Source: Podarcis melisellensis (taxonomy: Eukaryota). Taken from it: a stretch of DNA of 64,000 nucleotides. Positions 1-23,800 of the stretch are shown one piece after another. The notes below the pieces were generated by a model. That model saw nothing but the letters and a program-made list of their open reading frames with translations. It was not told the DNA's origin and did no database searches. A program made the position numbers and the translations under genes. The DNA lies in assembly GCA_964234715.1 (NCBI GenBank), contig OZ174280.1; one strand, 5' to 3'. Numbering within the stretch: position 1 is the stretch's first letter; every line of letters begins with the position of its first letter.

Positions 1-380
1 CCCAAAAGGGTCGGAGGGTCGGAGCGCGTTCCCCCACAGCACACCTTGGGTCAATTCCGCCGCCCCCCAACCTTAGGGGCGCGAGTTTCCCTCCTTCCTA
101 CTAGGGACCATGAAAGCCTTGGGACCTTGAGAATAAAGAGGCAGGCGAAGAGCTTCTCGTCCCTCCTTATCCCTCGCCTTGTTTGTCTGGCTTGTCCTGA
201 TGGAGCGGGTTGGGAGGAAGAGAGCCCTGTTCCCTTCATGGCAACCGGGAAGCCTTCGGCGAGGAGTGCCTGGCTTCCCATTTATAGCGCTTCCCACCCC
301 TCTTAATATCTCAGGGGGCGAGGGAGAAGACGTGGCAGCCCCCCGCGCCGCCGCCCCAAACAAACAAACGAGCGAGCAAG
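1..380. promoter_or_regulatory. 3' edge of a CpG/GC-rich island, probably the ZFYVE9 promoter/exon-1 island (exon 1 likely just upstream of the window)
   Basis: Many CpGs and GC-rich runs (cgcgccgccgcccc) in the first ~380 nt, then a sharp switch to AT-rich, CpG-poor intronic sequence; lies upstream of the ZFYVE9 exons. Confidence 0.6.
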
Positions 381-3300
381 CCTTCTCATACCGCTTCTGT
401 TAATTAGTGGATTCCCCTCCCCCATACATCCAGCCCCCCCCCACCGTAGAGCATATGCATCGCCTTTTCCCAGTCCTTGCTTGTTTTTGCAGTTGTGCAT
501 TCTTGCATCTCCTTTCTTTCCTGTCCTGCTGCTTTACAGGCAGCTCCCATTTGTTCGCAGCCCAAGTTTCTCATACTGGATCTTACGGGAATATTGCTGT
601 CAAGGTGTCCTATTTTGTGCCGAAGTACCTTCCTTTGCTCTGGCGTCGTTTGTTGCAGTCTGCTCACTATTTAAATAATTTGAAACGTGCCATAACTGCC
701 GAACTAGAGCGCTTACCAGGAGGCAAGGTTACTTTTAATTGTGTTTGTTGTTGCACTGACTTAAGTGATACTCACCTTGGTGATAAAATTCAGGTATTTT
801 TTAGTTCTGTGGATGTGGGTAAGTAGGTCCAGATGACTGGTTGCAATGGAGGGAATGCATATCTTGTAACATGAATAACTGGTGGGAATTACCTTGATAA
901 GTTTGAATGTTTAGGTATTTTGCATATATGTAAACAAATAGTATTTTCATGTACTGAAATAGAAGTATATATGACAACAGAATATATTTATTAATATATT
1001 TAAACAAGGTGAAGTTCCACATGTAAAATGTCCACAAAACTTGAATGGTCTTGTGGTGTTAGTGCAGATTTTCATATCTGAACCTGCTGCTATTTATTTG
1101 TGACTTAAGATGGATGCAAAATTTCAAAGAGCCTGGTAGAGTGAGTAAGGGAAACATGGAGGTCACACTAAAGGTTATAAGGACAGCAGGTTGATTATTT
1201 TTAGCACATAGACATCTAGAAGGATAATATATTTATTATGTAAAATATCAAAATCTGAATATAGATGCATGAAAGTGGAGTGCTTATTTGGATTGTACTG
1301 AAAACGTTAGGTTGTCTGAGCTTGGCCCAACATAGATAAAACTGCTTTTATTGATCAGCAACACAAAGATGCACATATGTGGTAGTGAATTAATGTTTTG
1401 TTTCTCTGGTATGGATTTAATATCACATGCCTTATATCAGTATAATTTAATGGCCAGGATTTACTAAACTAAAAATGTATTTACACTTGATTAAATTTAG
1501 TACAGTAGACAAAAAACTTTAGATTTTGATATCTGGTAAATGCTGGCACAATTAAGAGGGTTCTTCAGTGGCCCAGAGGTCCTTTAAATGTTGCTCAGCT
1601 GCACAGAAGCATTTCATTAAAAAAGCAGCCCTCACTTGACCAAAATTTAAAGGGCCCCATAGAGATCTGATTTTTTAAAAGCAACTTTACTTCACTGATA
1701 ATTGCAGCATGTCTCATGGCATCAAATCTAGGCTTTGGTTTAGTCTCATGCTTGAAATCTTACTGAAATTTATTTAAAGATTGTGAATGTCTATGCTGTT
1801 TCTTTTTAAAAATGCAAAATATTTAATCCTTCCATAATCCATGCAGCTCTAAATCTAAGCAAATAAAATTTAACATATAACTTAGACAGGCTTTACATTA
1901 TTTTAATAAATTAATTCTTAGTGCATAAGTAAAGGATGAACTATTCAGAGCAGATGCTTTTCAGCATGTATTCTAGCATTTATGTTCTCATTGTTCTTTT
2001 ACATTTGAAAATGATAGTGTATATCTAGACCACTGGGCTCCTTTGATGAAAAACGTAAATGGATGCAGAAATATATGCTGAAGTCAACAGGCAAATAATA
2101 TGCCTTACTAGAGCAGGATTGCTAACAGCTAAGAATTTTTATGTCAACATCTAACTGTTTGGATAAAGTATAACTAACAATATTTATTTTGGAATAATAT
2201 TTCAAAACAGGCTTGCAGGTAAATATTTAGGATTGGAATAGCAGAAACAGTGATAAAATATGTATGTATCCCTGTAGTTGTGAATGGTCCTGTGCGAAGG
2301 GTTATGGAAGTACTTTAATCTACTTAAGTTGCAGTCTTAACACACACCTACAAGGAAATAAACCTAATTAAACATAGTGGGATTTACTTTTAGGTAAATA
2401 TGCATTGTTAGAGCTAGAAGGCTATAACTTGACTAATCTGCTTCATTTTAATAAGAGCATAAGAGCCTGCTGGATGTAGTCTAGCACCCTGTCTCATAGT
2501 GGTCAACCAGATGCCCTAATGGAAGCCCATAAGCCATGTTAAAATTCTCAGTTTATACCACCTTTGTATAAGCAAAGTTATGGATATTAGGGTGCTATAT
2601 TATACTTTTTTCATGGTGCTGGTATTAAGGCAGTTTTTAAGCCACCAGCCCAAGCATGCTTAAGTTAGTAGTTTAAAGTAAAAATAAACACAGTTTATTT
2701 GTTGTAAATATCCTTATCAAGTGGCTTGAAGGCAATTTTTACTCACACAGGAGACCAAGTGGCTATTTACAAGCCCTATACAAAGGTGTTGAAACAAGTC
2801 TCTAGTAATTTTGACTTCGTTTTGCTAAATGAAACCTGGGAGTTGATGCAAAGGTTTTTGGAGCATGTGGCCAAGAGTGAAATTGTGGAAACTGTTTGAA
2901 ATGCTCAGTGAACAGTAGTTGCCTAAACCTTTTAATTTATGTAAGAAGATGTGAAAGGTGGAAGCAAACAGTGTTTCTCTGCCGATGGAAGGCATTTGTT
3001 ATAGAACTAGAGGGCCGGCAATTCTTCCTCCCTGCCTTCTCCCCAAAATTTGCTGAGGTTTTGGGGAACCCCTTGGAGCAAATTTCTGGGGGTTTGCAGG
3101 AGGGAATTTATTTTCTCCACCAATGAAGCAACACCAACTGAATTCTATTCAGAATAATACAGTATTTAATTTTCTCCATCATTGTGTGTTTAGAAGGACA
3201 ATAGGTAGCTGTCTTATAGAAGTCAGACCATTGGTCCACCAAGCTTAGTATTGCTGCTAATGGTGTCTCCAGGTAGGGTTGGAAAAGACTCCTGACAGAA

Positions 3301-3509
3301 ACACTGGAGAGCAAATTCCCTAGAGCCAAGCTCTAGCAGCTATGTAGCTTAGGATGCAGGTTTAGCTGCTACTGAAGTACTGTAGAGTCATAGGGTGTGA
3401 TTGATTATGATTACATGTATGTTTATTTTAATTCACAGTAAGTCTCTCTTCAAGATGACCAATCACAATAAGCATATGAGGAAAATAGTTGAGTCATAAG
3501 TACTGTGAC

Positions 3510-3965
3510 CTATTTATTTGTTTAAAGTATTTATTTCCTGCCCCTTCATTGTAAAAGCAGTGCTCAGGATATGAAAGAAACAAAACAAAATTGCATATTT
3601 TTATGCAAGCAAGATTGGGGAATATCACAGCAGGGTTGTGGGGTCAGTACAATAAAAGTGTGTGGAGTCAGTACAATAAACACATCCGTCCAACAGGCCA
3701 AACTTGCCCCAGAACACAAGTGTCTTCACTATGTACTAGACAATTATTTGGGTGAAACAAACCTCCTTTGAGAAAGAACTTTCACAGCTTAGATGTGATC
3801 CCAAGAAGGTTGTCTTCCACATCTCAACCAGGAACCTCTCTTCCACTGGTAGAACATAATCTCTCCTGGAGATGTTAATGAGGAGGACTGCTCTGATTGG
3901 AGGAGGGAGTCCTTTAGATTAAATAATAAAACTTTAGATAAAGGTAATTAACAGTAGCTGGAATT
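3510..3965 (-). mobile_element. Degenerate L2-like LINE 3' fragment (approximate boundaries)
   Basis: Begins with a reverse (aaat)n-type tail tatttatttg...cctgcccc, followed by decayed L2-like 3' sequence. Confidence 0.4.
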
Positions 3966-6082
3966 GTAAAGAAGTTTGCGCAATTACGCTTTCCCAACGG
4001 AATATATATTGTATGTTTTTGATTAAACAAAAATAGCTTTTAAGAGCAAGACCCTAATTATATACAGACTTTGCAAGTTCCTGTCAATGGGACTTGCTTA
4101 CCAGTACTGTACTGTACTTCAAAGATTCAGTACTGGTAGGTTAAGCCTATTTTGAATAATGGGAAAATAATGGACTTTTGTAGAAAAAAGAATGCTTTGC
4201 TCTCAAACTCCTTAAAGGCATCTGGCCTCAGAAGGTCCGGCCTTTGTATTCTGTTTGTAGACATCTTTTTAGTAATAGCTGTGGAAATTGAGCTTCATTA
4301 AATGACCCATTTAATTTTTTTTAAACCAAACCTTCACTGCCTCCATCTAATTAACTAAGAAGTTGAGTGGAAGGTTTGTTTTAGTTCAGTCCAGTCTGTC
4401 AGCTCCTACAGTGAGATTGTACTGCTACTTTACAAATATTTTTTTAAAAAAACAGAGATTAGTTTATGTGCTGTGGAAAACAAAGCATGTATCCAGAAAT
4501 GTAATAAAAGGCAGTGTGTGTTTTTGTCTTGGTGCAAATGTTAAGAAAGCTGGTCCATATGTCAGCTTCTTAGTGAGTGTACCTGAGGCAAGTACTCATG
4601 CTGCAAATTTTGCATAGTGTGTATGTGGGGGGAGGATAATTCCTGTCTGGTTCACCTCATACAGTTATCTGTCACATTTGTTTCAGTTGAGAGGAACAGC
4701 TGGCCTAGAGGTGCTGTTTTTACAGCAACTGGTACTTATAAACTAAAATAGGAGGTCCTATATATTTTTTGTGTTTGCATACTGTTGTGACTTCTTGGAT
4801 GAGCATTGTTTACTTTTTGTGGTCCATTACTTTCAATTGCTTTAGTGCAGATCTAGGCCAGTACAAAAGAAGAAGGGTTAAATGCATGTCTCAAGCACAA
4901 TAGCTTTTGTTTTGTCACTGAAGTGGCAGATGGGAAACCAGAATCTCTTACATTCCCGCATACATTGACTATGGGGGAGAGGCATTTACCATCAGCTGAT
5001 GATCTTAAAATTAGACTTCATTTGAGTGTGCTTCTTGAGTGTTCTGTAATAAAAAGCATGTTTATTGTATCAATGCACTCTTAAAATTTTATACAGATGA
5101 TTACATTTTGAGCTAATGTATGCTGTAGAATCATCTTCTAAATTGACTGAAATTCATATAAATATATGAAGTAAACCTATGAATTGGTTGTATTTTGCTT
5201 TATTGCACAGTATTCAAATACATCAATTTTCTAGATATGTTAAATGTCTCTTCTGGTATATAGCCTTTTTTGTTAGAACATCTGTAACTGTCAGAAACCT
5301 CTGTGTTGATCCCCCCCATAATATAGCAAACATAGAAATCCGTAATGTTCCCTGTAAAAGGCAGATCAAAGTACTGTACAAATCTCCTAATAGCTGTGCC
5401 TAGCTATGAATGACACTTCCTCGTTATAAGTACTTTCATATTTTCTGATTTCACTTTGCTGTGTCAAAATTTTGCTTTGAACTCACTCCTAGCTGTGTTC
5501 ACCTAGCTGGCTGTACACTGTTTGGTATACAATTACTATGTAGGATCAGTAGGATGAAAGCTTGTTTAGATGTTTAGTTGTCTTATGTTTGCAGTACTGT
5601 TCGCACCAACATTCAAAAATTCATAAGACTGAAGTTAATTATTCTGCATCTCCCAGTCCTTACATCGCTCCCTGTCCTCCTATTCATTCTGCTATTAAAT
5701 TGAGAGTGAAGATGGCATAATGATTCTTTTGTGTTGTTTATCTCTTCACCTTGTTGTCATGCTGCCATGCCCTTTTGCTGGATATTCTGCATCCTTGGTG
5801 TACATTGGCTCATGGGACTATTGGGTCATGAATAATCTTCATGAGAAGAAATGTTTTATGTATATGCCTGCTGCACATTGAAACACCAAAATAAGCCATT
5901 TCCCAGATAGCCTTTTAGTAAAATGTCTACTCACCACAAAATATGCACACTAATCAACTTATCACCACTTTGGCATAACACCCACCACTCATTTTCACTA
6001 CATAATTGCACTTTGCTCTACTCATGCTTAACTCTGATCTAATTTCTCTCCACCTCTCCACGTTTGGTCTCCGTAATTATTG

Positions 6083-6212
6083 ATCATAGAATTGTAGAGT
6101 TGGAAGGGATGGCAAGGGATCATCTAGTCCAACCCCCTGCAATTCAGGAATCTTTTGCCTAACATGGGGCTCAAACCCATGACCCTGAGAGTTTCATGCT
6201 CTACTTACTGAG
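6083..6212 (-). mobile_element. tRNA-Lys-derived SINE with CR1-like tail
   Basis: Reverse complement matches the + strand copy at 39961-40099. Confidence 0.75.
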
Positions 6213-6279
6213 GAAGGGAGAACAATGTTGAAAGTCTCTATTGATGATGGAACCAGGAATAGGAAAAAGCAACACAAAA

Positions 6280-6530
6280 TACCGTATACACACTGACCCA
6301 TAGGGCGCACCTAGTTTTTTTGGGAGGAAATAAAGAAAAAAAATTATTTCCCCCCACACACTACTCAGTGCGCCCCAGGCTTCGAGGTGCAGGCTGCTAT
6401 CCGCAAGCCTGGAGAGCCCGAACTCTCAAGGCTTCAGCGAAAGCCTGCATTCGCCCCATAGGACGCACACACATTTCCCCTTCATTTTTGGAGGGGAAAA
6501 AGTGTGTCCTATAGGGCGAAAAATACGGTA
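6280..6530. mobile_element. Tc1/mariner-type MITE (CCGTA...TACGG ends, TA TSD)
   Basis: ta-ccgtat... / ...cctatagggcgaaaaatacgg-ta. Confidence 0.7.
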
Positions 6531-6572
6531 TGTTGACCAGGGACTGCATCATAGCATAGGAAAGGTGGAGAG

Positions 6573-7593
6573 TAGGGCTGGGTGATAAATCAGTATATCA
6601 TCCCAAACTGTTTTTGAATCCACATTGTGATAACTGTTTTGACCTGGCAATATATCATGAGAGAAATTTGGACAAAAGGATTGGAAACTGATGACTTCCC
6701 CATGGGGTGGCTCGGCTGAACCAAGACTTTTCTCTGCAGGAAGGGGAGAATCGCTACTGCTGGGATTAAAATATGTAGAGCAGGGGTAGTCAACCTTTTT
6801 ATACCTACTGCCCACTAATGCATCTTTCTTGATGGTAAAATTTCCTTACCACCCACCAGTGCTCGATGGAAGGAGGATTCAGCTTGTGCCGTAGAACCCC
6901 CAACCGCCCACCTAGAATCTTGAAATGGCCACTAGTGGGCGGTAGGGGCCAGATTGACAACCCCTGATGTAGAGGGAAGGGGACTCTCCCAAATCACACA
7001 CACACAAGTTTGGAGAGGGGCAGGCCAAACAGCGCACTGCCATCTCCTTGCTTTGCTCGCCTCCCTCCCCAGCGCCACAGTCCCTTCTCCTTGCACTGAG
7101 GGAGGCGGCAGACGTGCATCTTTGTCTCAGAGCTGCTCCCCCACTACCACCCCTGCCGCTCCCATCCCTGCTACTAGCTCTTCTCCCATGCCCTCAGTTC
7201 TGTGGTCAGCTTTCCCGCAAGGTGGGAAAAACCGTGAAGCTAGTCAATGCTTCTCAATTCCTGTTACTCGTCTTCTGCATGTGCGTGTGTGTGCATGCAT
7301 GCATGTGTTTGTCTGTCTCCCTGTGCTAAGACTCTGAATATAGGGGTGGGGGTTCCCCCTCTAGGGTCTGTCTCTTCTGCTTTCCCTTTCTATTCCACCC
7401 CATCCAGAAACTGACACGAGGTTTGGCTGCTTCTTCCTCCCCACCTCTCTCTGTCTGGGTAGCAGTTGCCAGGACATTACCCCATTTGCTTCTACATGGT
7501 TCCATCCTTATTTCAGGCATCGTTATATATCTGTATATCACAGTATTTAGCTGGTATATCACGATGGTGAAAACCAGATATCATCCAGCCCTA
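6573..7593. mobile_element. Older hAT-like non-autonomous element (TAGGGCTGG...CCAGCCCTA TIRs) hosting a nested MITE
   Basis: Imperfect TIRs tagggctgggtgataaat / agatatcatccagcccta; no clean TSD. Confidence 0.55.
6781..6966 (+). mobile_element. 186-bp hAT (Buster/Charlie-type) MITE
   Basis: TIRs caggggtagtcaa / ttgacaacccctg; perfect 8-bp TSD ATGTAGAG; second copy at 60314-60499. Confidence 0.9.
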
Positions 7594-8248
7594 GGGAAAG
7601 AACAGTGTGTAGGAATGAAGTGATTAGGGCCCATTCCCATTGGCATAATTTCTTGTTTTATTGTAGTCAGTGAATACACACAGTGGTTCTGTGGTGTTGA
7701 AAATGTATTTTTTGTAGTGTGGTGGGCACATACCCACAGCCTCATGGTACATCTTCATGAGAAGAAAAGACTAAGGAGTAAACCCTACACCTATCTGGAA
7801 TGGAGTCTGTAAGATGATTGAATGATGTTTTGTACACCTCCTTCTGGCAACTCCTGCAGCCAAGCTGGTACCAAACATATTGCTCGGCTTTCCTTAGCAA
7901 GACTGAGAGGGGGTCTTGTTGTCTGGGCAGCCTAGGACCTGCCCAGACTTTTGCCCCGGAGAAGTCACTTGGATCTGCCATTTTTAAAATGTCTGCAGGC
8001 ATCGAAGTATGCCAGTCAAATTAATAGTCCTGTTCTGTATTATTATTTTCCATTACACATTACACATTTGTATTTATTTGGTTTTGGTATTTAATTTCTC
8101 ATGTCACTCTATTTATTTGAGTCAGAGAGGAGGGAAGGTACACTAACCAGAGGGACAGTCACTAGGTGGCTTAGTTGAATGCTTCTGTGGAAAGATATAC
8201 ACCAGGGGTGTCCAAGAGACTGCGATCTACTCCCACTATAAATAAACT

Positions 8249-8350
8249 TCTGTTTCAGTGTATCTGAAGAAGTGTGCATGCACATGAAAGCTCATACCAA
8301 GAACTAACTTAGTTGGTCTTTAAGGTGCTACTGGAAGGAATTTTTTTTGT
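8249..8350 (+). mobile_element. Short Penelope-like retroelement terminal-repeat fragment
   Basis: Flanked by a 12-bp TSD TATAAATAAACT (8237-8248 and 8351-8362). The sequence ctgaagaagtgtgcatgcacatgaaagctcatacc...ttagttggtctttaaggtgctactgg resembles reptile Penelope terminal repeats (recognition only). Confidence 0.75.
8260..8297 (+). ncRNA. Minimal type I hammerhead ribozyme motif (Penelope-associated)
   Basis: GUAU-CUGAAGA-A-GUGUG(CAUG)CACAU-GAAA-GC-UC^AUAC: stem I GUAU/AUAC, core CUGANGA and GAAA, palindromic AGCU in place of stem III, UC cleavage site. Confidence 0.7.
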
Positions 8351-9349
8351 TATAAATAAACTGGCAGTGATCTACCCATTGGATTTGAGCTTTTTTGGGG
8401 GGAGAGATCAGAGAAGTTGAGCATTTTTTAGGGAGAGAGGTCAGATCGACCGGTAGATCGTGATCGACCAGTTGGACAGGCCTGATGTACACAATCTAGA
8501 AACAAGGATACATTGAAGAGCTCAAGTTGCAGCCCTCATGTTTTGCCATCTTCTGCGTACTTGTAGCAAAAACGTATTCCTGGTTATTTCCTTAAGACTA
8601 TTTCCTCCATACTTTGGTGTTAGTCTCCAGCTAGTCTGGTAAAAAGTTAATCCTATCACAGAAAACTTGGTTTATTATAATAAGAAAGTAATGTTTCCTA
8701 ATGAAAGTGAGAACCACTATAGATTAGGTGCTATAAGGTGCCCAAATCTTTTATTACCTGAGATGAATAAGTACAAATTTCTATTGTAGGCATAAGCAAG
8801 TGTTACCAGTTAAGCTAGTGAGAAAATGGCAAGTCTTTTCAAGTTTGTATCTAGCAGCTTATTGTGATGCCTTTGTAGTCTTAGGGCTTGGTTACTCTTC
8901 TAAAGTTGCTTTTGACTGTGTTTCGGGAAGCACATTTACATAAGGATGCATGGCCTCATAAAGAAACTAGATGCAGTTCAGGACACTGATAATAAACTAG
9001 TTTAAGCCCATCTTACCTCCTGCCTCTTCATGAGATCAGATGTGTGCTGTCTACACCTTATTTGGGAAAGGATAGTTGATAGTTCATCTGTGTAACTGCT
9101 GTGGAGATTTGGGAGCATGTGTTGGAGACAGGGAATAATTGGTATCTTTTTGGTGGGGGGCTTTCTTTGGTGGCCACTTCAATGTAGTGGAGCGAAGGTT
9201 ATGTTATCAAATTGTTTTTAATAGGTTTCGGGGGGGGGGGAATCTTACCCTAACTTGGATTTCAAGATGAGGCAGGCTGAAAATAGCTAAACTACATACA
9301 ACTAATAGCAGCTTTAGGAATTCTAATGTGGTGTTTGTTTCATTTTTAG

Positions 9350-9454
9350 GATCAAGCAGAATATACAGATTCAATTCAACTAGCTGATTGGGCAGTGTAT
9401 ATCATGGATAGACATTGGTTCATTCGTTTCTTTATGCATGTGTAGGAGAAAAAG
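9350..9454 (+). other. ZFYVE9: Probable 5'-UTR exon of ZFYVE9 (contains uORFs)
   Basis: Acceptor gtttgtttcatttttag|GATC and donor AAAG|gtaaga, 105 nt, upstream of the first coding exon. Confidence 0.65.
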
Positions 9455-11256
9455 GTAAGAGGATGGCAAATGACAGTATACATCTGGAATATTTGAATTA
9501 AGAGAGCGCCTTTAAATTTGCATCCTTGGTATGCTTCTTATATTGCAGTCCTCAACAGATCAGAAATTTATTTATTTATTGAGTTTCTGGCCTGCTGTTC
9601 CTTCTAGGGCAACAAACAACCAAGCAGGAAAACATTTTTTTCATCCCAGAGCCTTCCACAATAAGAGTAATGAATCAGTCTAATTTCTAGTAATGTTTCT
9701 AGGGTGTTTTGTTTAAAGCAAGGACAAGGAAGCTGTGGCCCTCAATATATTGTTACTTTTATCATTGCTGGCCACAATAGTGTTCTGCAATAGAATCATG
9801 CATTTTTAAATTTAAAGTTTAGAGCTTCCTGTTTGTAAGAAAATTATTATGGGCGGCGACCATTTTGGGCGTGATTGCTGACACACTGGTCCTTTTGGAC
9901 CCAGAAGAAGGTGGAGGGGTGGTGCACTTATATGTGCTATGCCAATGTACACAGGTTGGAAGTGGATCGCCCACATGAAATGGTTGCCATTTAACAACTT
10001 TTAGCTGTGCTTTTGCAGTAAATGGGTGCTGTGAATAATACATACTTACTAATGTATTGGATTGTGAACTGAAGTGTATTTAAGGCCAAGTTTGCCTGCC
10101 TTTTCTTTAGACTCTGTTCTGGTTTTTTCCTTGAAACCTAGCTGTGGAATCAGGCACTGTCACTAAGTTCTTGATTTAATGTATTTTGGTTGCTTTCTCC
10201 AGCACAAATGTTTGCAGGATAGATTTGGGAGAAAGTTTTAGAAAGGTGCACATAACAAGCTAGCTTTTTTGTTTCACTTGTGAGGCTACATATATTGAAT
10301 GACTGGGTTGTCTGGTTCATTGTGTGCATGCAAGGCCTACTATTTTGCATACCAGCACAGACTTCTTCAATGTTTATTTGGATGGTGGCATTAAAAATTG
10401 CAGGATTTGCTTCCGGTTAAAGAATTGGTTGATCTCCTGACTGTGTGCAGGAACAGGTCAGTTGTGTGCACTACACTTTATCGTTACAGTGTTAATTTTA
10501 AAATTCTGTGTTCAGATTTCCTTCCCTATATAATAAATACTGTTGTAAGATATTCAAATCTCTCTCTTAATTTCTATGAGGTCCTTGATCTTGAATAAGT
10601 CATATCAGTCACATTGCATTTAAGACTTTAGTGTGAAATAGTATTACTTCCTTGGCTAATATGTTGGCTTGTTTTGAGTTGTTGTTCCAGTCCACCAGGA
10701 ATATGTGATTGGCAAAGCTTAGGCTAAATGCTGCATCCTGTCATGCATTAATCTATGTTAGATACTGTAGATGCTGCAGATTCAAGAATGCAAAGCACAA
10801 TAGATAAAATATTATTGAATTAACAGGAGTCATCTTTTTCAAAGTCCATTATATAATTTATTTGACTGAAATGTTCAAGAGCCCATACTACAGTAAAGCT
10901 CACTAGATAGCTTTGGACAAGTCAGTGATTTTCAGTATAGCTTTGTTTCCTGTGGGGTTGTTTAATGTTCTGTAGAAAAGAAAGGAATATATATTTGTAT
11001 AAAGTGAAGATTTCTGAACTGTCACATCTACTCTTCTTTGCAATTATTGTTTCACCTCATCCATTCAAAACTTTTTTATGTAGAGATGGTTTATAAAGTT
11101 ACTTGCCATTGGGGAGTTACCAAGATGATATATTTATTAGGTAACATATCCCAAAGCGTCCTTGTAGTTCAAATCTGTTATATGGATGAGAAATGACTGG
11201 TAGCATTCTTGGGTCAAGCATAAATATGGAGTTGTGTGTGTGGTCGGAAGACTGAT

Positions 11257-12170: not shown

Positions 12171-12419
12171 AGCTTTCTGTGTTTTAGCTGTGTTTGTACA
12201 TTCTGGACAAATCTAGTTTTTATTCTTTTGTTTATTTATTCCCCACATTTTCTCCAGAACCAGGGCTCAAGGCAGCTTACAAAAATTAAAACAACGCTAG
12301 GCGATGCAGAAGGTGGGGTCTAGATTAGGACTGATGCCATCATGTGATGGCACTGGGGCTCACTGAAGATCCAGTAGCTCCTGAGCCAGCTTAGTGCCCT
12401 CCCCCCTCTCCCACTAGAG

Positions 12420-13389
12420 CAGTGTTTCCCAACCGGTGTTCCGCGGCACACTAGTGTGCCGCGAGACGTTGCCTGGTGTGCCGTGGGAGGGAGGCGGGCG
12501 AGTCGGGCGGCGGGAGCGCAAGGCTTGCGGGCGGGAGCACGGGGCGCCCTTCGGAGGCCGCCCCATGCTCCGCGCTGGTGTTGGCCAGCCTTGCGCACCC
12601 GGGGGATCTCCCCCCAGGAGCGCAAGGCTTGCGGGCAGCAGCTGGCAGCGCGGCGCCCTTCGGAGGACGCCCCGTGCTCCGCGCTGGTGTCGGCAAGCCT
12701 TGCGCACCCGGGGGATCTCCCCCCGAGAGCGCAAGGCTTGCGGGCGGCAGCTGGCAGCGCGGAGCACGGGGCGCCCTTCGGAGGACGCCCCGTGCTCCGC
12801 GCTGGTGTCGGCAAGCCTTGCGCACCCGGGGGATCTCCCCCCAGGAGCGCAAGGCTTGCGGGCGGCAGCTGGCAGCGCGGAGCACGGGGCGCCCTTCGGA
12901 GGACGCCCCGTGCTCCGCGCTCGTGTTGGCAAGCCTTGCGCACCCGGGGGCGCGTGGGGCGCCCTGAAACAGAGGGTTCCCCATGCTGCGGACTGTAGCC
13001 TGCCGCCCGACGCGCGGGGCGTCCTGAAGCAGAGCGCCCCTCGCGCCAGGCAGACATGGGCCAGCCCCACAAGCTCGGGGGACAGCGGGGAGGCGCAGCA
13101 CCGCCATCCCACTGTTCCCCGACCTGGTTTTTTTGGGGGGGGGGAAATAAAGGAAAAAAATTTTTCCTTTATTTCCCCCCCCAAAAAAGTAGGTGCGTCC
13201 TATTTCATAATAAAGTAATTATAAAATACTTTCTTTGTGTTTATTTGATGCCTATTAAAGAGAGTTACTTTATATATAGTCAATATAGGCACACAGTTAA
13301 TTTTTTAAACATTTTCTAATGGTGGTGTGCCTCGAGATTATTTTCATGAAACAAGTGTGCCTTTGCCCAAAAAAGGTTGGGAAACACTG
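12420..13389. mobile_element. 970-bp non-autonomous hAT (Buster/Charlie-type) element
   Basis: Perfect 15-bp TIRs CAGTGTTTCCCAACC / GGTTGGGAAACACTG; perfect 8-bp TSD CACTAGAG (12412-12419 and 13390-13397). Confidence 0.92.
12514..12950. repeat. GC-rich minisatellite, ~4 units of 104-118 bp, each internally palindromic
   Basis: gagcgcaaggcttgcgggc starts at 12514, 12618, 12727 and 12845. Confidence 0.9.
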
Positions 13390-13697
13390 CACTAGAGCAC
13401 ACACACCTGGTCTGGTGGGTAGAATGGGGGAGTTCTGCTTTGGTAGAAGGAGTAGATACTAATGGAGGCTGGCAGTGTTAGGCAGTAAATTGGTTTCAGT
13501 AGTTGATACATATTAATTTTGTTTCAAAGTTATTAATAATTGCCATTGTGAAGCTCACTGAATATGTTCATTTAGGAAGTCCTGCAATGTTTCATATTTT
13601 ACATAGGATCTTAGTTTTAGTGGATACATAAAAGAATAGATTGGTACATTTTCTATCATCATGCCAGTCATCCTGCTGTCATTTAACTAAATTTATA

Positions 13698-13937: not shown

Positions 13938-14822
13938 CTACTTAACTCAAACAAGAACTCTCTAAGTTGCTTACAAAAGACTTTTATTTCCAAAAGTTAG
14001 CTAAGAGTGTGATTCCAAGTGAGTTGTAGGTTGGGGTGTGAAGTGACTGTATTCTATTTTTAATCCTATGTTGGCTAGCACTGGCAAGGTTGGAGGTGTA
14101 AGGACAGACTTGTCTTCTTCTTGGCTCCTAGGGAGCCTTTTCTTTTTTAAAAGAATCACCCCATTGGTTCTAATGGAGAGGGAAATTAGATATACCAGTT
14201 CCAGAGTGGCATGGATGCAGACCTGATCGTGTCTCGGCCAGTCATACTCTGCCCTTGGAGTGCCTTGTTTCAGGGCCTAACATTGATTACTGCTAGTGAA
14301 AATAGAACTGTGCCTATGGAGCTTTCCCACATAACGTCCCCCCTCCCCATTGGAGACATCTTCACTGCCATCAGAGGGACTCCTCCATGCAACCCTAACC
14401 CTTTCCATCCATTAGATCTGTGAGTTAGGTTTCCCCTTCCCGTCTTTAGAAAGAAAAGGAACAATATGATTTTATTAGGGTTTTTAAAAATAATAATAAT
14501 AATACTTGCAGCAAATAACTAATAAAACCAAAATAAATCCTTAAGTCCCTTCTTTAGTCTAGAAGGCTTCTAATTTATTTGTATATCTGGCTGATATGGA
14601 TGAGGCATTAGGAATTAGAGGATCAATACAGTTTCATCATCACAGTTTTGTAATACTGGGAAATGCTTTTGATTTTATAGGAAATAGTCAAACTAGCTTA
14701 AATTTTAAGCTTGGTAATAATCTCTAAATCTTATGATGGGACATTGGAATATTGCTAGAAGTTCATAACTGGCTGTCTGCTTGACAGGTTCAGACAAGGA
14801 GCTGGGTGGCATTTCCTGACAA

Positions 14823-14892
14823 ATGGAGAACTATTTCCAGGCAGAGGCTTTTAACCTTGATAAGGTTTTAGATGAATTTGAACAAAATGAAG
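14823..14892 (+). CDS. ZFYVE9: ZFYVE9 first coding exon (exon starts at 14788)
   Basis: [23 protein letters not shown]; acceptor ttgacag|14788, donor G|gtgagt. Confidence 0.95.
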
Positions 14893-17800: not shown

Positions 17801-20800
17801 TTAACAATGCCATCTACAAAGGGAACAGTAACTAGAAATGCTTTTGCTTCCACAATATTTTTCAGTATAAGAAGCTATTTGCAATTATTTTAATCTCATT
17901 TATGCTTACGATAATTCTGTGAAGTTAGCTAAAGCTGCAAGATGATGTCTTGCCCAAGGTCACCCAATTAGCTTTAAGATTAAACAGGAATTTCAATGTG
18001 CTTTTGAGTCTCCAGAATTGACATTCAGTTCAGTTTGCTGTGCTATATTGTCCCCAGCTTCTTTGAACAATTTGTATGATGTCAGTTCTTGTTTGGGTTT
18101 TACATGTTTGTCTTAATTAATGCTGTTGTTTTGTACTTCCTCTGGTTTGCAGCTAAATATATCAATCAAGATGTTAAGATGACGTATTCCCATAAGATGT
18201 GTATTATAAAGAAATATTTCTATTCCAGGCCTTAGAGACTAATCAAAACCAGAAATCTAACTTGGGAGCCAAACTAATAATCTAGAGAAATGTATGACTG
18301 CATTTTCATCTTTTTGAATTTGATTTAAAAAATAGCAGTTGTGGGAGTACCTAATCTGCATTGGGTCTCCAGCACAGGGTAAGGAATATTTTATACTTTG
18401 TCTCTGTGCTTTTTCCCTAACAAAATTTCTCCCTTAAGCTGCTATTCACTCTGGAATGAAAAACATATGACACTCATTTGTGTGTTCTTCTAGGGCAAAT
18501 AGCAACTTATGGGTGGTTTTCATTGGGAAACTTCAAGAGGTAAAGTGTTAAACCAACCTACACTGTGGTTCTGATTTAGACTGAGACCTTTGTGACCGTA
18601 AAACTGCATACATTTCAAAAGATGGAAATACAGTAATTTTCATGCAAACTGGGATCTTGTCTGAACCTGGGTTTAAGCTAGTTTAACTATAATTGCTTCT
18701 TGCAAAATAAGATAATAATTATAATTATTGTTATGCAATACACTTGCAATGCAGTACCCACACAGGGGTGAAGGATTGCTGCATTTCAGGGGGTTGGACT
18801 AGATGGCTCTCGTGGTTCCTTCCAACTCTGTAATTCTGTGGTCTACAGTTCTTGGAATTCTTTGGAACATACCATGATAATGAAATGAGCGAAAGCTTAT
18901 AGTGTAAGACCTAATTAAAACAACCCTTCCAACTGCTGATAAACAAAGCTTAGGTGTGTGTTGCTGCCTCTACTAGTACCGTATTGGCCCGAATGTAAGC
19001 CGCACCCGAATAAAAGCCGCATCTTTAAAATTCGGGGGGGGGGGAGGAAAAAAGAAAATACCTGAATACAAGCTGCTCCCTTAAAATTCTGCAGGCATTC
19101 ACACCTGTTCCGTTTTACCATATATCTGTTTCAGCAGCAATATCATAAAAGCCAATTTTTGTAAGGTCGCAAATTTAAGCCATACTTTAAACTTTCCACG
19201 GCCAGAATTTGGAAAAAAAAGTGAGGCTTATATTCAGGCCAATACAGTATTATGTATTTTTCCTTTGATATACAAACATTTGAACTTCTTGTGCAAAGTA
19301 CAAGTTACATATGCTAAATTTATTGCATATTGATTTAAGTTACTTATCTTTTCAGATGAAGCTGTTTCACCTGCTTTGTTGGATGCAAAGTGGAATAAGA
19401 TCCTAGATCCTCCTTCCCATCGGCTGTCTTTTAACCCAGCTCTGGCCAACGTGAATGAATCCACAATTCCTAATGAGTGTCCGCAAAAGTTGAAGTCATT
19501 CTCCCTGTCTCAGTTAGCCACTGCATCAACAGGAGGAGGAGATTGCTGTTCTAATGGAAAGAATCTTAATATAAGACAAGAAAGCCCAAACATGTGGATT
19601 GATGATCAGGCAGCAACAGATGATCATCAGCTAGTTAAGAGAAATAGCAATCGAAATGCCCTGTACAATTTGATGGATGAAGAAGGAAGGAAAAAGAAAC
19701 CAGAGGAAAAAAACGTTCTTGTAGTAGCAGTCATGCATAACTGTGACAAAAAAGGACTGCAAAGTGATTTGTTAGATTGTAGAAATTACAGCAATTCCCC
19801 CAGAATGGATACGGTTAGCTTTACACTGGATAATGAAACCCAACAAACTGATCACATTGATGTTACTGTAAACGGGTCCCTTGAAAAAGATTCAGATACT
19901 GAAAAAGATGCAGTACAAGCAAACAGGCTACCTGCAGAAGAAGATTTTTTCAACCATTGTAGTGTTGCTGCTTCTGCCTGCTTATCCAGTGGATATTCTT
20001 CTCGGTTAAAGGAGAATGATAATTCAAATAAAGACCTTCATTTCTCAGAAACTGCAGCAGCAGGGATGAATGTAATGACATTGCAGAGGCCACTTGGCCC
20101 TAGTGTTAAAATACAGCAAAGCTGTGCGTCAGGTGAGGGTTTTGATACTGATGCTGTTGCTCAGCTGGAAACTAGAAACTGTTTACCTAGTTCACGTAAT
20201 TGTGGTTTCTCCACAGAGGTTTCTGTTGCAGAACCAGCAGCCCAGCCATTTCAGTCAGGGATATGTGAGGTCTCTGCAACTTGTCAGCCAAATACGCTTG
20301 AAAGTGGTAATCACGGTGAAAGTTCTGACGGACATTTGGCCTCTATGGATGTTGGTGCTGCTGACAACGAAGCTGACAAATATGAAAAAATACTCAGCTC
20401 AACTGAATTGCTCAGCACGACAGTTTGTTTATCAGAATCTCAGGAGATGGCAAATGGGGAACTGACTAAAGAAAATCAGATCAGTAATGAGCAAACACCT
20501 GGGGAGGATGAAACACTGTTGCATACAGCAAAGCGGGAGGAAGCATGTAGTAGTAATGGAGATAGCAGCGATGGCATGACAGTAGCAAGTCAGGACTTAA
20601 AGGGAGCATATATGGATGAGTTTGAAGATTCCCGCCCCACTGATGTCATGAGTACATCGGCATCAAGTGCTCTGCTCAATTGTTGTGATTCCTATGGAAT
20701 ACAGAACCCAATTCTTGCTCATATTCCAAAGACTTTACCCTCCAAGGAAGACTCAGTGACTGAGGAAAAGGAGATAGAGGAGAGCAAATCAGAATGTTAC

Positions 20801-23800
20801 AATAATGTTTATGAACAAAGAGGAAATGAGGCCACAGAGAGAAGTGGGCTCATTTTGAACTGCACTGGTGACCAAATTAAAAAAAAACATTTACATAATC
20901 TCTGCAGTCAGGTACCATCCGAAACAAGTCAAGCATCACCAAAACAAGCAGCTAGTCTGCAACCTCTCAGTGTTCCTTTTGGTGGTGCCCGACCCAAACA
21001 GCCTACAAATCTTAAACTACAAATTCCAAAGCCATTATCGGACCATTTACAAAATGATCTGGTTCCCCCAAACTGTGGAGGAAACAGTAAAAACAAAAAT
21101 GATGTATCTGGAAAAGTAAAAGTAGGTGAAAACATAGCAAATGTATTTTCTGATGAAACATCACTGAGTGCATCAGTCACAGATATTGGCGGGGAGCATT
21201 CTGATGATTATAAGTCTGGGGTTTCTAGTAGTTCGTGCCTTGCAGCAGCTTCAGATAGTCCGGACAACGACCTTGGAGCTGGCCAGTTTGGAGTTCCTAC
21301 AAGAAAGCCATTTACTACTTTGGGTGAAGTGGCTCCGGTCTGGGTTCCAGATTCTCAAGCACCAAACTGCATGAAATGTGAGGCCAGATTTACATTCACT
21401 AAAAGGCGACACCATTGCAGAGCCTGTGGAAAGGTATGTTTATATTTAATGAAATATTTTCGCAAATGATTGAAGCCACAGAATTGGGGGGATATTTTTA
21501 GTAAGCATTTTGTAGTTTTTAGCAAATTAAGGTTAGATATCTATTTATTTTAATGGCTACTGAAAATAACATGAGTGATAAAGGTATTATTAATTGTTAT
21601 TTTTGCATCAAGCTAGAAAACAGTATACACCCCAAATAAATAACTTCTTGAATCTTATGGGGTCCCCCCCAGCACACTTTGTGATTAAGTATAGGCAGAA
21701 GCAGAGCTGCAGCACTAGGTTTATGGCAGAGGTGTTATTGCTGCAGCTTACTGGGAGGTAGTGGAGCAAGGTGACAGAGAGGTCAGTGTGGTGTGGCTCA
21801 ACTGGCAGGAATGCCGGATTAGCTTTGCCAGTGTGGACGTACCACACCAACTTCTGTGATGCCTCATACCTTGGCTTCCTCCTCCTGATAAGTAGCAGCA
21901 GCAGCAGCCCAGCTGATGGGAATCTAGGGTGCTGCTCTGCCCCACTGGACAAACCACTTTTCACTATAGGCTGCTTGCCGTGGTGAGTGTGGCATCACAT
22001 TCTGGCAAGAGTAAGAAACAGCCAACCTTCACCCCAGCTTTCAAGCTGTGGGGTGGTCCATGATGAGAGGTTGGGAGGTGGTTTGGCAGCTGGTGAGCCC
22101 GGCCATGGAGACCAAATTGGCAACCCTTCTGCTGGCCTTTCCTGCTCCAGATCAGAAAGGGTGAAAGCAGAGGGAGGGGGAAAGAGGTGTCTTCAGGCAG
22201 TGGCTGTTTCCTGAGTTGCCTTTGCCTTTTTAAGTAGAGTGTTGTATGTAGTTCTCTAAAGGTGCTTGCCATGCTTTCAAGCCGTTGCTGCAAGCAGTAA
22301 GCAATCTCTGCCCTGAATGTTTGATCAGCCAAAAATTAACTGATTTGCTTGTTATTTCATACATTTGTGGTATCACTATTACAATATAACACCACTCCAA
22401 ATTCTTAGAAGACTCTAGGGTTGAGAGGGAATGTTGTGATAGCTAAAAATACATGATGTTGGTTCTGGGTAAAGCACTTCTCTGTACAAGTGCTTCTTAT
22501 ATAGGTTGGACCATTTTACAAGTGGTTTTAGCACACATAAGTAGAAATAAGTCCACAAACATCATGTTCCCTCAAAATCTTTATACCCCACCTGCCTGCG
22601 TGTAACTAATTCATTAGCAGATTTAGAGACGATGAAAAATATTTTCTGTCTGGTTGCCTGAAAGGAATGCTGACTTAGCATAAGTGACCAAACAAAACGT
22701 CATTTGTAAGTCTGGTTTTGTATCATGTTATCTGGTTTTCAGCTGAAAAAATACAAATATTTTGTTTTTTTAAATATTCCTGAGAAATAGGTAAATGTGT
22801 GGCATTTAGGATTTCTGTGCTTTCATTTTAATTTGGATGTAAAATAAGCCTGATATCTTGGGGCCTTATAAAAATACAGACCCGAATATTGTTCTCAGCT
22901 AAGACAAGGTAAAGTAGAATTAAGAGAATAAAAGATCTGTAATCAGCACAGCTGTGCATGGTGCTGTAGGAATGGAGTGTCACAGTGTTTTATTTAGCAA
23001 TTATCCATTTTATTTATCAAAGAAAGCACAGGGGCTTTTCTTTCAGTGGGATTCCTGCTTGTAGTTAGGGCTTTTTAAACCATTTAACTATAATAGACAC
23101 CTCTTTCTTCCCATTTGAAAATTGTTTTACACTGAGAGCCCCTTCAGGCTGGTGTTTTATCACACGTTTATTCTGCAACGTATCCTTGGCACAATAATAG
23201 TGCAAAAGTGGTGGATTTATTTTGCTTAAATTTGTTCTGTGATGCTGCCCCAGTGCTACCTCATTATTGTTGTACGGAGGGGTATAGTGCAACAAAATCA
23301 GAACATTTGCAGTATAAAAAGTAACAGGGTTTCAACAGACAGTTACAGGATATGCACTGGTTGAAAATGAAGAAATGTGGCTGCCCCAAAATCTTTGCAG
23401 TTACAAACAGTATTGAAAGTGGGATTGCATGTCACTGCCCTGATAGCACCACTGTAGTTTCTTGCTGTCTAAGAACCTCTCTCTCCCTTAATATTTCATG
23501 CTGATGCACAAATTGGTATAGGTAATAATCACTATAACACCCAACACTAAGCTGATGTTTTCCTTTACATGAAGCGTTTTGGCATTGCTTTATTTACAGT
23601 TCATTTCCTCTGGGCAGCAGATTTTTCATTGACCTTGACCTTGTTTGAATAAGCATTACTGTATCCAGTGTGATACTCTTTTTCTCCAGTGAATAAATTA
23701 CATAAGAACTTGCACCTTACTGAATTCAACTTTAGCAAAGATGGTCCTGAACATGGGTTAAAAAAGGTGTAACAATTGATTTGGGGAGATCCTCTGTAGA

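Follow-up and report, generated by a model that had tools for sequence, protein, structure and literature searches.

In the reading that we favour, with moderate confidence, positions 9350-9454 of the window (the whole 64,000-nt stretch of Podarcis melisellensis DNA that was analysed) form a genuine leader exon of ZFYVE9 carrying a 13-codon upstream open reading frame (uORF). Conservation concerns where this frame lies, its start context, its length and its stop, but not its amino acids, and the frame would act as a putative damper on SARA, the ZFYVE9 protein. The uORF is probably an ordinary translational brake on SARA, not a conserved micropeptide, because its start, its length and its stop have persisted across lizards, birds, turtles and a mammal. 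As the endosomal anchor through which Smad2/3 is presented to TGF-beta receptors, SARA affects signalling by its dosage. The argument turns on the following features:

9350..9454, + strand: ZFYVE9 5'-UTR exon (second leader exon), 105 nt, from sequence, splice sites, orthologues and transcripts
9350..9403, + strand: 18 stop-free codons upstream of and in frame with ATG 9404, open in 10/10 species
9404..9445, + strand: 13-codon uORF, from ATG 9404-9406 to TAG 9443-9445, from sequence and a ten-species comparison
9438..9454, + strand: third upstream ATG (9438), +1 frame, weak context, read from sequence
14788..14892, + strand: ZFYVE9 ATG exon, with a 35-nt leader part, ATG 14823 and 23 codons, ending in phase 1
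19356..21433, + strand: large ZFYVE9 coding exon, reaching the start of the FYVE finger, the basis for gene identification

Over 691 residues, the translation of the large exon is 99.1% identical to ZFYVE9 of Podarcis muralis, 99.0% to that of P. raffonei, 98.6% to that of P. lilfordi and 96% to those of Lacerta and Zootoca. Between the leader exon and the ATG exon downstream of it lie 5.3 kb. The acceptor of the leader exon consists of a pyrimidine tract followed by AG at 9348-9349, and its donor GT at 9455-9456 stands in the context AAG/GTAAGA, scoring 10.9 bits with a simple PWM. Re-translation of 9350-9445 reproduced exactly the 31 residues and stop that a sequence-only reading had described for this stop-free stretch, and the closing TAG does stand 9 nt before the donor, as that reading had stated. 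In the ATG exon, the 35-nt leader part is nearly identical in eight other sauropsid genomes, and the main AUG has a strong start context.

Searching the 10 kb upstream of the ZFYVE9 ATG in other genomes, we found the orthologous exon, with both splice sites, in Rhineura, Elgaria, Phrynosoma, Anolis sagrei, Python and the hawk Accipiter gentilis. These six exons contain no internal indels, except for 1 nt near the 3' end in Python. Across the genomes compared, exon identity amounts to 71-90%, versus 55-79% for the flanking intron; the corresponding figures are 88% versus 60-64% for Elgaria and 72% versus 56-61% for the hawk. The Rhineura exon is 90% identical to that of Podarcis and, like that of Elgaria, aligns with it without indels. 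In Gekko kuhli, neither BLAST nor an nhmmer profile detected the exon within 10 kb upstream of the ATG exon. Assembled RNA contigs show the exon spliced onto the ATG exon in the turtle Mauremys reevesii (L008) and in the hawk (L010), and the same junction recurs in a second bird, in three independent runs (L013-L015), and in a non-human mammal (L012). On its own genome, the hawk transcript falls into two blocks (L009 3763-3871 and 9964-10073). The earlier assignment of the stretch to the 5'-UTR of ZFYVE9 is thus borne out by orthologous transcripts that splice it straight to the ATG exon, and judged by its splice sites, orthologues and transcripts, 9350-9454 is a genuine internal ZFYVE9 5'-UTR exon, conserved across amniotes.

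For Podarcis itself, we infer the presence of the exon in mRNA from its intact splice sites and from the gene model of a congener. An annotated ZFYVE9 isoform of P. lilfordi (P0234, 1422 aa) starts inside the leader exon and runs on into the ATG exon; its first residues correspond to window 9412-9453 in the +2 frame and then to window 14790-14807, and the congener annotation therefore joins both exons. The protein collection held no lacertid transcripts, the P0117 cluster consisting of genome-derived models only; a short N-terminal query against this collection gave no close match, and a look-up of ZFYVE9 isoforms in Varanus and Hemicordylus returned no entries. In RefSeq, several transcript accessions carry one and the same ZFYVE9 protein in each of P. 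muralis, P. raffonei, Zootoca, Lacerta and Rhineura; this implies annotated variants with differences confined to untranslated exons, so that the leader exon may be alternatively included. Such multiple transcripts in lacertids suggest alternative leaders, some of which possibly skip the exon, and they can be cited for the view that the stretch is decayed or skipped in mature lizard ZFYVE9 mRNA, where the frame would then be irrelevant. We consider this highly improbable in view of splice sites that are both intact and strong, the close and indel-free match to the Rhineura and Elgaria exons, the junction with the ATG exon in P0234 and the presence of the exon in transcripts of turtle, bird and mammal.

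As a protein model, P0234 looks like an annotation artefact. In its start frame (+2), the window carries a TAG at 9409-9411, and the model requires an extra intron within the ATG exon to enter the ZFYVE9 frame. Reasoning from the protein, its N-terminus would require the P. lilfordi assembly to have a 1-nt indel directly behind the conserved upstream ATG; if real, this indel would shift the uORF frame in the congener.

Alignment A3 comprises ten amniotes, nine sauropsids and one non-human mammal. The in-frame ATG at 9404, previously noted as having a strong context and opening a 13-aa frame, is there as described, with A at -3 and G at +4. In the alignment it is invariant in 10/10 species, as is the A at -3, while invariant columns overall make up only 22/93 (24%). 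The frame that follows measures 13 codons in every one of the ten species. In 9/9 sauropsids the stop occupies the same codon, although its third base has changed between G and A (TAG/TAA) three times. The mammalian exon is 15 nt shorter and the old stop is gone; there, the uORF ends, again after 13 codons, at a TAA that forms the second codon of the following exon. The orthologues thus show neither the stops nor the lost ATG that had been named at the outset as grounds for giving up the idea: the ATG is kept in all ten and the frame is open in all ten.

An open stretch of this size in one genome is not beyond chance, since among random 105-nt pieces of the window, 31 codons are free of stops in 20% when the phase is fixed and in 49% when any phase counts; the sequence-only reading had rightly cautioned against this. 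For the comparison between species we used column shuffles, which preserve the pattern of each column across species and are conditional on the frame of the window being open. Under these shuffles, the eight other sauropsids were jointly open with a probability of 0.039, and all nine others including the mammal with a probability of 0.018. Start codon and frame are conserved above background (ATG in 10/10 versus 22/93 columns; P 0.018-0.039), and the statistical support for conservation of the frame, resting on ten species and 93 columns with P of about 0.02-0.04, is modest.

In a rival explanation, which we rate as less likely, the exon may be conserved for reasons unconnected with translation of the uORF, such as sites for RNA-binding proteins, enhancers that help to splice a small internal exon, or an overlapping DNA regulatory element, with the ATG and its frame as mere passengers. 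Conservation at the nucleotide level extends over the entire exon and into the 35-nt leader part of the ATG exon instead of being focused on the uORF, so the ATG may ride on another constraint. Substitutions show no codon periodicity (28/24/31 changes at the three positions), and the open frame of a single sequence is, as shown above, within chance. Against passengers speak an ATG that is invariant where only 24% of the columns are, a stop codon whose position survives three changes between TAG and TAA, and a frame kept open beyond the column shuffles (P 0.018-0.039). The mammal lost 15 nt including the old stop, yet a new stop in the next exon restored the 13-codon frame. In general, moreover, selection acts against upstream AUGs in good context that have no function.

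A conserved RNA fold was considered as the cause of conservation as well. The RNAalifold consensus reached -3.5 kcal/mol, with a covariation term of +0.25 that adds no stability, and folding of the leader exon against shuffles gave a z-score of +0.45, hence no unusual stability. This candidate was ruled out by the weak consensus and the z-score.

The sequence-only reading had also envisaged a conserved, aromatic-rich micropeptide, and on this point our results depart from it. Mapped on the sauropsid tree by parsimony, changes are spread evenly over the three codon positions, with counts of 28/24/31 for the 31 codons and 14/9/13 for the uORF; the amino-acid purifying selection by which a conserved-peptide uORF is recognized does not appear in these counts, and the 13 residues diverge widely. 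The alignment and codon statistics that had been proposed as a check revealed no excess of third-position changes; pairwise NG86 dN/dS values of about 0.24-0.44 are noisy over 13-31 codons, lack a null distribution and are given no weight here. Residues 1-5 are similar among species (Met, small/acidic, Arg/Lys, His, Trp/Arg), and the Arg and His codons have undergone synonymous changes. Over residues 5-13, lizards, birds and the mammal differ freely, and past residue 5 the peptide of the mammal bears no relation to the others.

It had further been predicted that an upstream exon ending in phase 0 with an ATG would extend the frame. This holds in turtle and bird, where an exon-1 ATG (context GCCATG) lies in frame with phase 0 of the leader exon and opens a 42-codon uORF of the same length in both (L008:124-252 in the turtle, L014:113-241 in the bird). 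It does not hold in the mammal, where the exon-1 ATG lies in the +1 frame and opens 22 codons (L012:202-270), the TGA of which overlaps the conserved ATG of the second uORF (L012:267-308). Given this +1 frame, there is no long peptide common to all amniotes, and with exon-1 AUGs lying in different frames in turtle and bird on the one hand and the mammal on the other, the conserved unit is the AUG with its short frame, not the peptide. In the mammalian transcript, the UGA of the 22-codon uORF and the AUG of the 13-codon uORF thus overlap (L012 202-308); stop-start overlaps of this kind are associated with termination-reinitiation.

In the lizard, comparison of turtle, bird and mammal exon 1 with window 1-9349 by short-word BLAST and Smith-Waterman gave matches no better than shuffles. 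A donor scan of the upstream part of the window yielded a sole in-frame candidate, ATG 813 with a donor after 818, which is weak and without other support; the squamate loci compared do not extend far enough upstream to cover exon 1. The 18 codons at 9350-9403 would be translated only if lizard exon 1 gives an in-frame ATG. At the beginning of the window, 500 nt (1-500) are rich in CpG (58% G+C, CpG observed/expected 0.65) and are cut by the window start, which suggests that the ZFYVE9 promoter lies at or before this point; they probably represent the edge of the promoter island of this gene.

With exon 1 taken into account, a functional micropeptide could be either the 13-residue aromatic-rich product or a sauropsid product of about 42 residues that starts in exon 1. 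Several observations agree with this: the 42-codon uORFs of turtle and bird are equal in length and begin with an in-frame exon-1 ATG; all ten species keep the 31-codon frame open; residues 3-4 (Arg/Lys, His) are retained with synonymous changes at both codons; and the NG86 values of about 0.24-0.44 point the same way, but are noisy and without a null distribution. A functional peptide is difficult to reconcile, however, with third-position changes that are not in excess (28/24/31), with residues 5-13 that differ freely between lizards, birds and the mammal, and with a mammalian exon-1 ATG whose +1 frame stops at the conserved ATG, and we regard it as improbable. The same low expectation applies to its most specific form, in which the exon-1 AUG and the leader exon of sauropsids would encode a functional micropeptide of about 42 residues, or a ribosome-stalling nascent peptide gating SARA synthesis, with lizard exon 1 giving the same start.

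If the uORF is instead a translational brake, as we favour, its mode of action can be outlined. Scanning ribosomes would start at the well-placed upstream AUG, read 13 codons and terminate 44 nt before the main AUG of the spliced leader (9 nt in the leader exon plus 35 nt in the ATG exon). SARA would then come only from ribosomes that bypass the upstream AUG while scanning or manage to reinitiate over so short a distance, making the uORF a constitutive damper on SARA synthesis, possibly an eIF2-sensitive one. In turtle and birds, the in-frame exon-1 AUG would extend the uORF to 42 codons, and in the mammal a separate 22-codon uORF would precede it. A third upstream ATG stands at 9438. Read exon by exon across the junction, its frame would run from the leader exon through 14788 to a TAA at 14852-14854 and would cover the main ATG in a different frame. 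The bird and turtle transcripts contain an equivalent of this ATG, which is absent in Rhineura, Python and Accipiter; as it is not found in all species, its frame lies outside the conserved core. A variant in the human ZFYVE9 5'-UTR increased reporter protein while leaving RNA unchanged, by a mechanism that was not stated (PMC12859497), and the human ZFYVE9 leader is in this sense translation-sensitive.

Upstream AUGs with short frames form a known regulatory class, damping translation of the main ORF through leaky scanning and reinitiation. The ZFYVE9 uORF resembles the position-conserved members of this class in vertebrates in that its 13-codon frame lies wholly in the 5' leader, has a good start context and ends a few tens of nucleotides before the main AUG, and in that the AUG and the length are conserved and the peptide is not. 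Unlike typical regulatory uORFs, it is conserved to an unusual depth, from lizard to mammal, within a 105-nt exon that is conserved as a whole, and both its translation and its repressive effect are predictions. Multi-uORF leaders of the ATF4/GCN4 type work by delayed reinitiation under eIF2 phosphorylation. Like these, the ZFYVE9 leader contains two or three serial upstream AUGs, with a last frame that would overlap the main AUG out of frame in several species and, in the mammal, an overlap between the stop of the first uORF and the start of the second; however, the overlapping third frame does not occur in all species, and the spacing of the uORFs differs from the ATF4 layout. The uORFs of AMD1 and DDIT3 are classic conserved-peptide uORFs (CPuORFs). 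Those of animals have been catalogued (PMC7530721). The ZFYVE9 uORF shares with CPuORFs its persistence across distant vertebrates and the retention of a few N-terminal residues, but the amino-acid constraint that defines the class is not seen, and the peptides of sauropsids and the mammal differ.

The retention of an upstream AUG with a 13-codon frame for some 300 million years suggests that SARA is under translational control, an aspect absent from the literature searched. A full-text search for ZFYVE9 together with uORF or micropeptide returned no paper describing a ZFYVE9 uORF, the link between the two consisting in the reporter variant of PMC12859497; ORF catalogues from ribosome profiling may list one. 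As this uORF is one among thousands of conserved uORFs, its value is specific to the gene, not conceptual.

The intron that separates the leader exon from the ATG exon harbours a transposon-like insert (window 12414-13395), which is bounded by 21-nt terminal inverted repeats that are 95% complementary and contains many internal palindromes. Its interior has a G+C content of 75% and comprises about four tandem units at a spacing of 109-118 nt. The equivalent intron of Gekko kuhli (L001 7200-8750) contains a GC-rich satellite with units of about 70 nt, which scores as a CpG island, yet is repetitive; it resembles the interior of the Podarcis insert in being a GC-rich tandem array, but no sequence similarity between the two was found. 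Within the gene, the insert at 12414-13395 is the sole strong CpG-island-like signal and could pass for a promoter.
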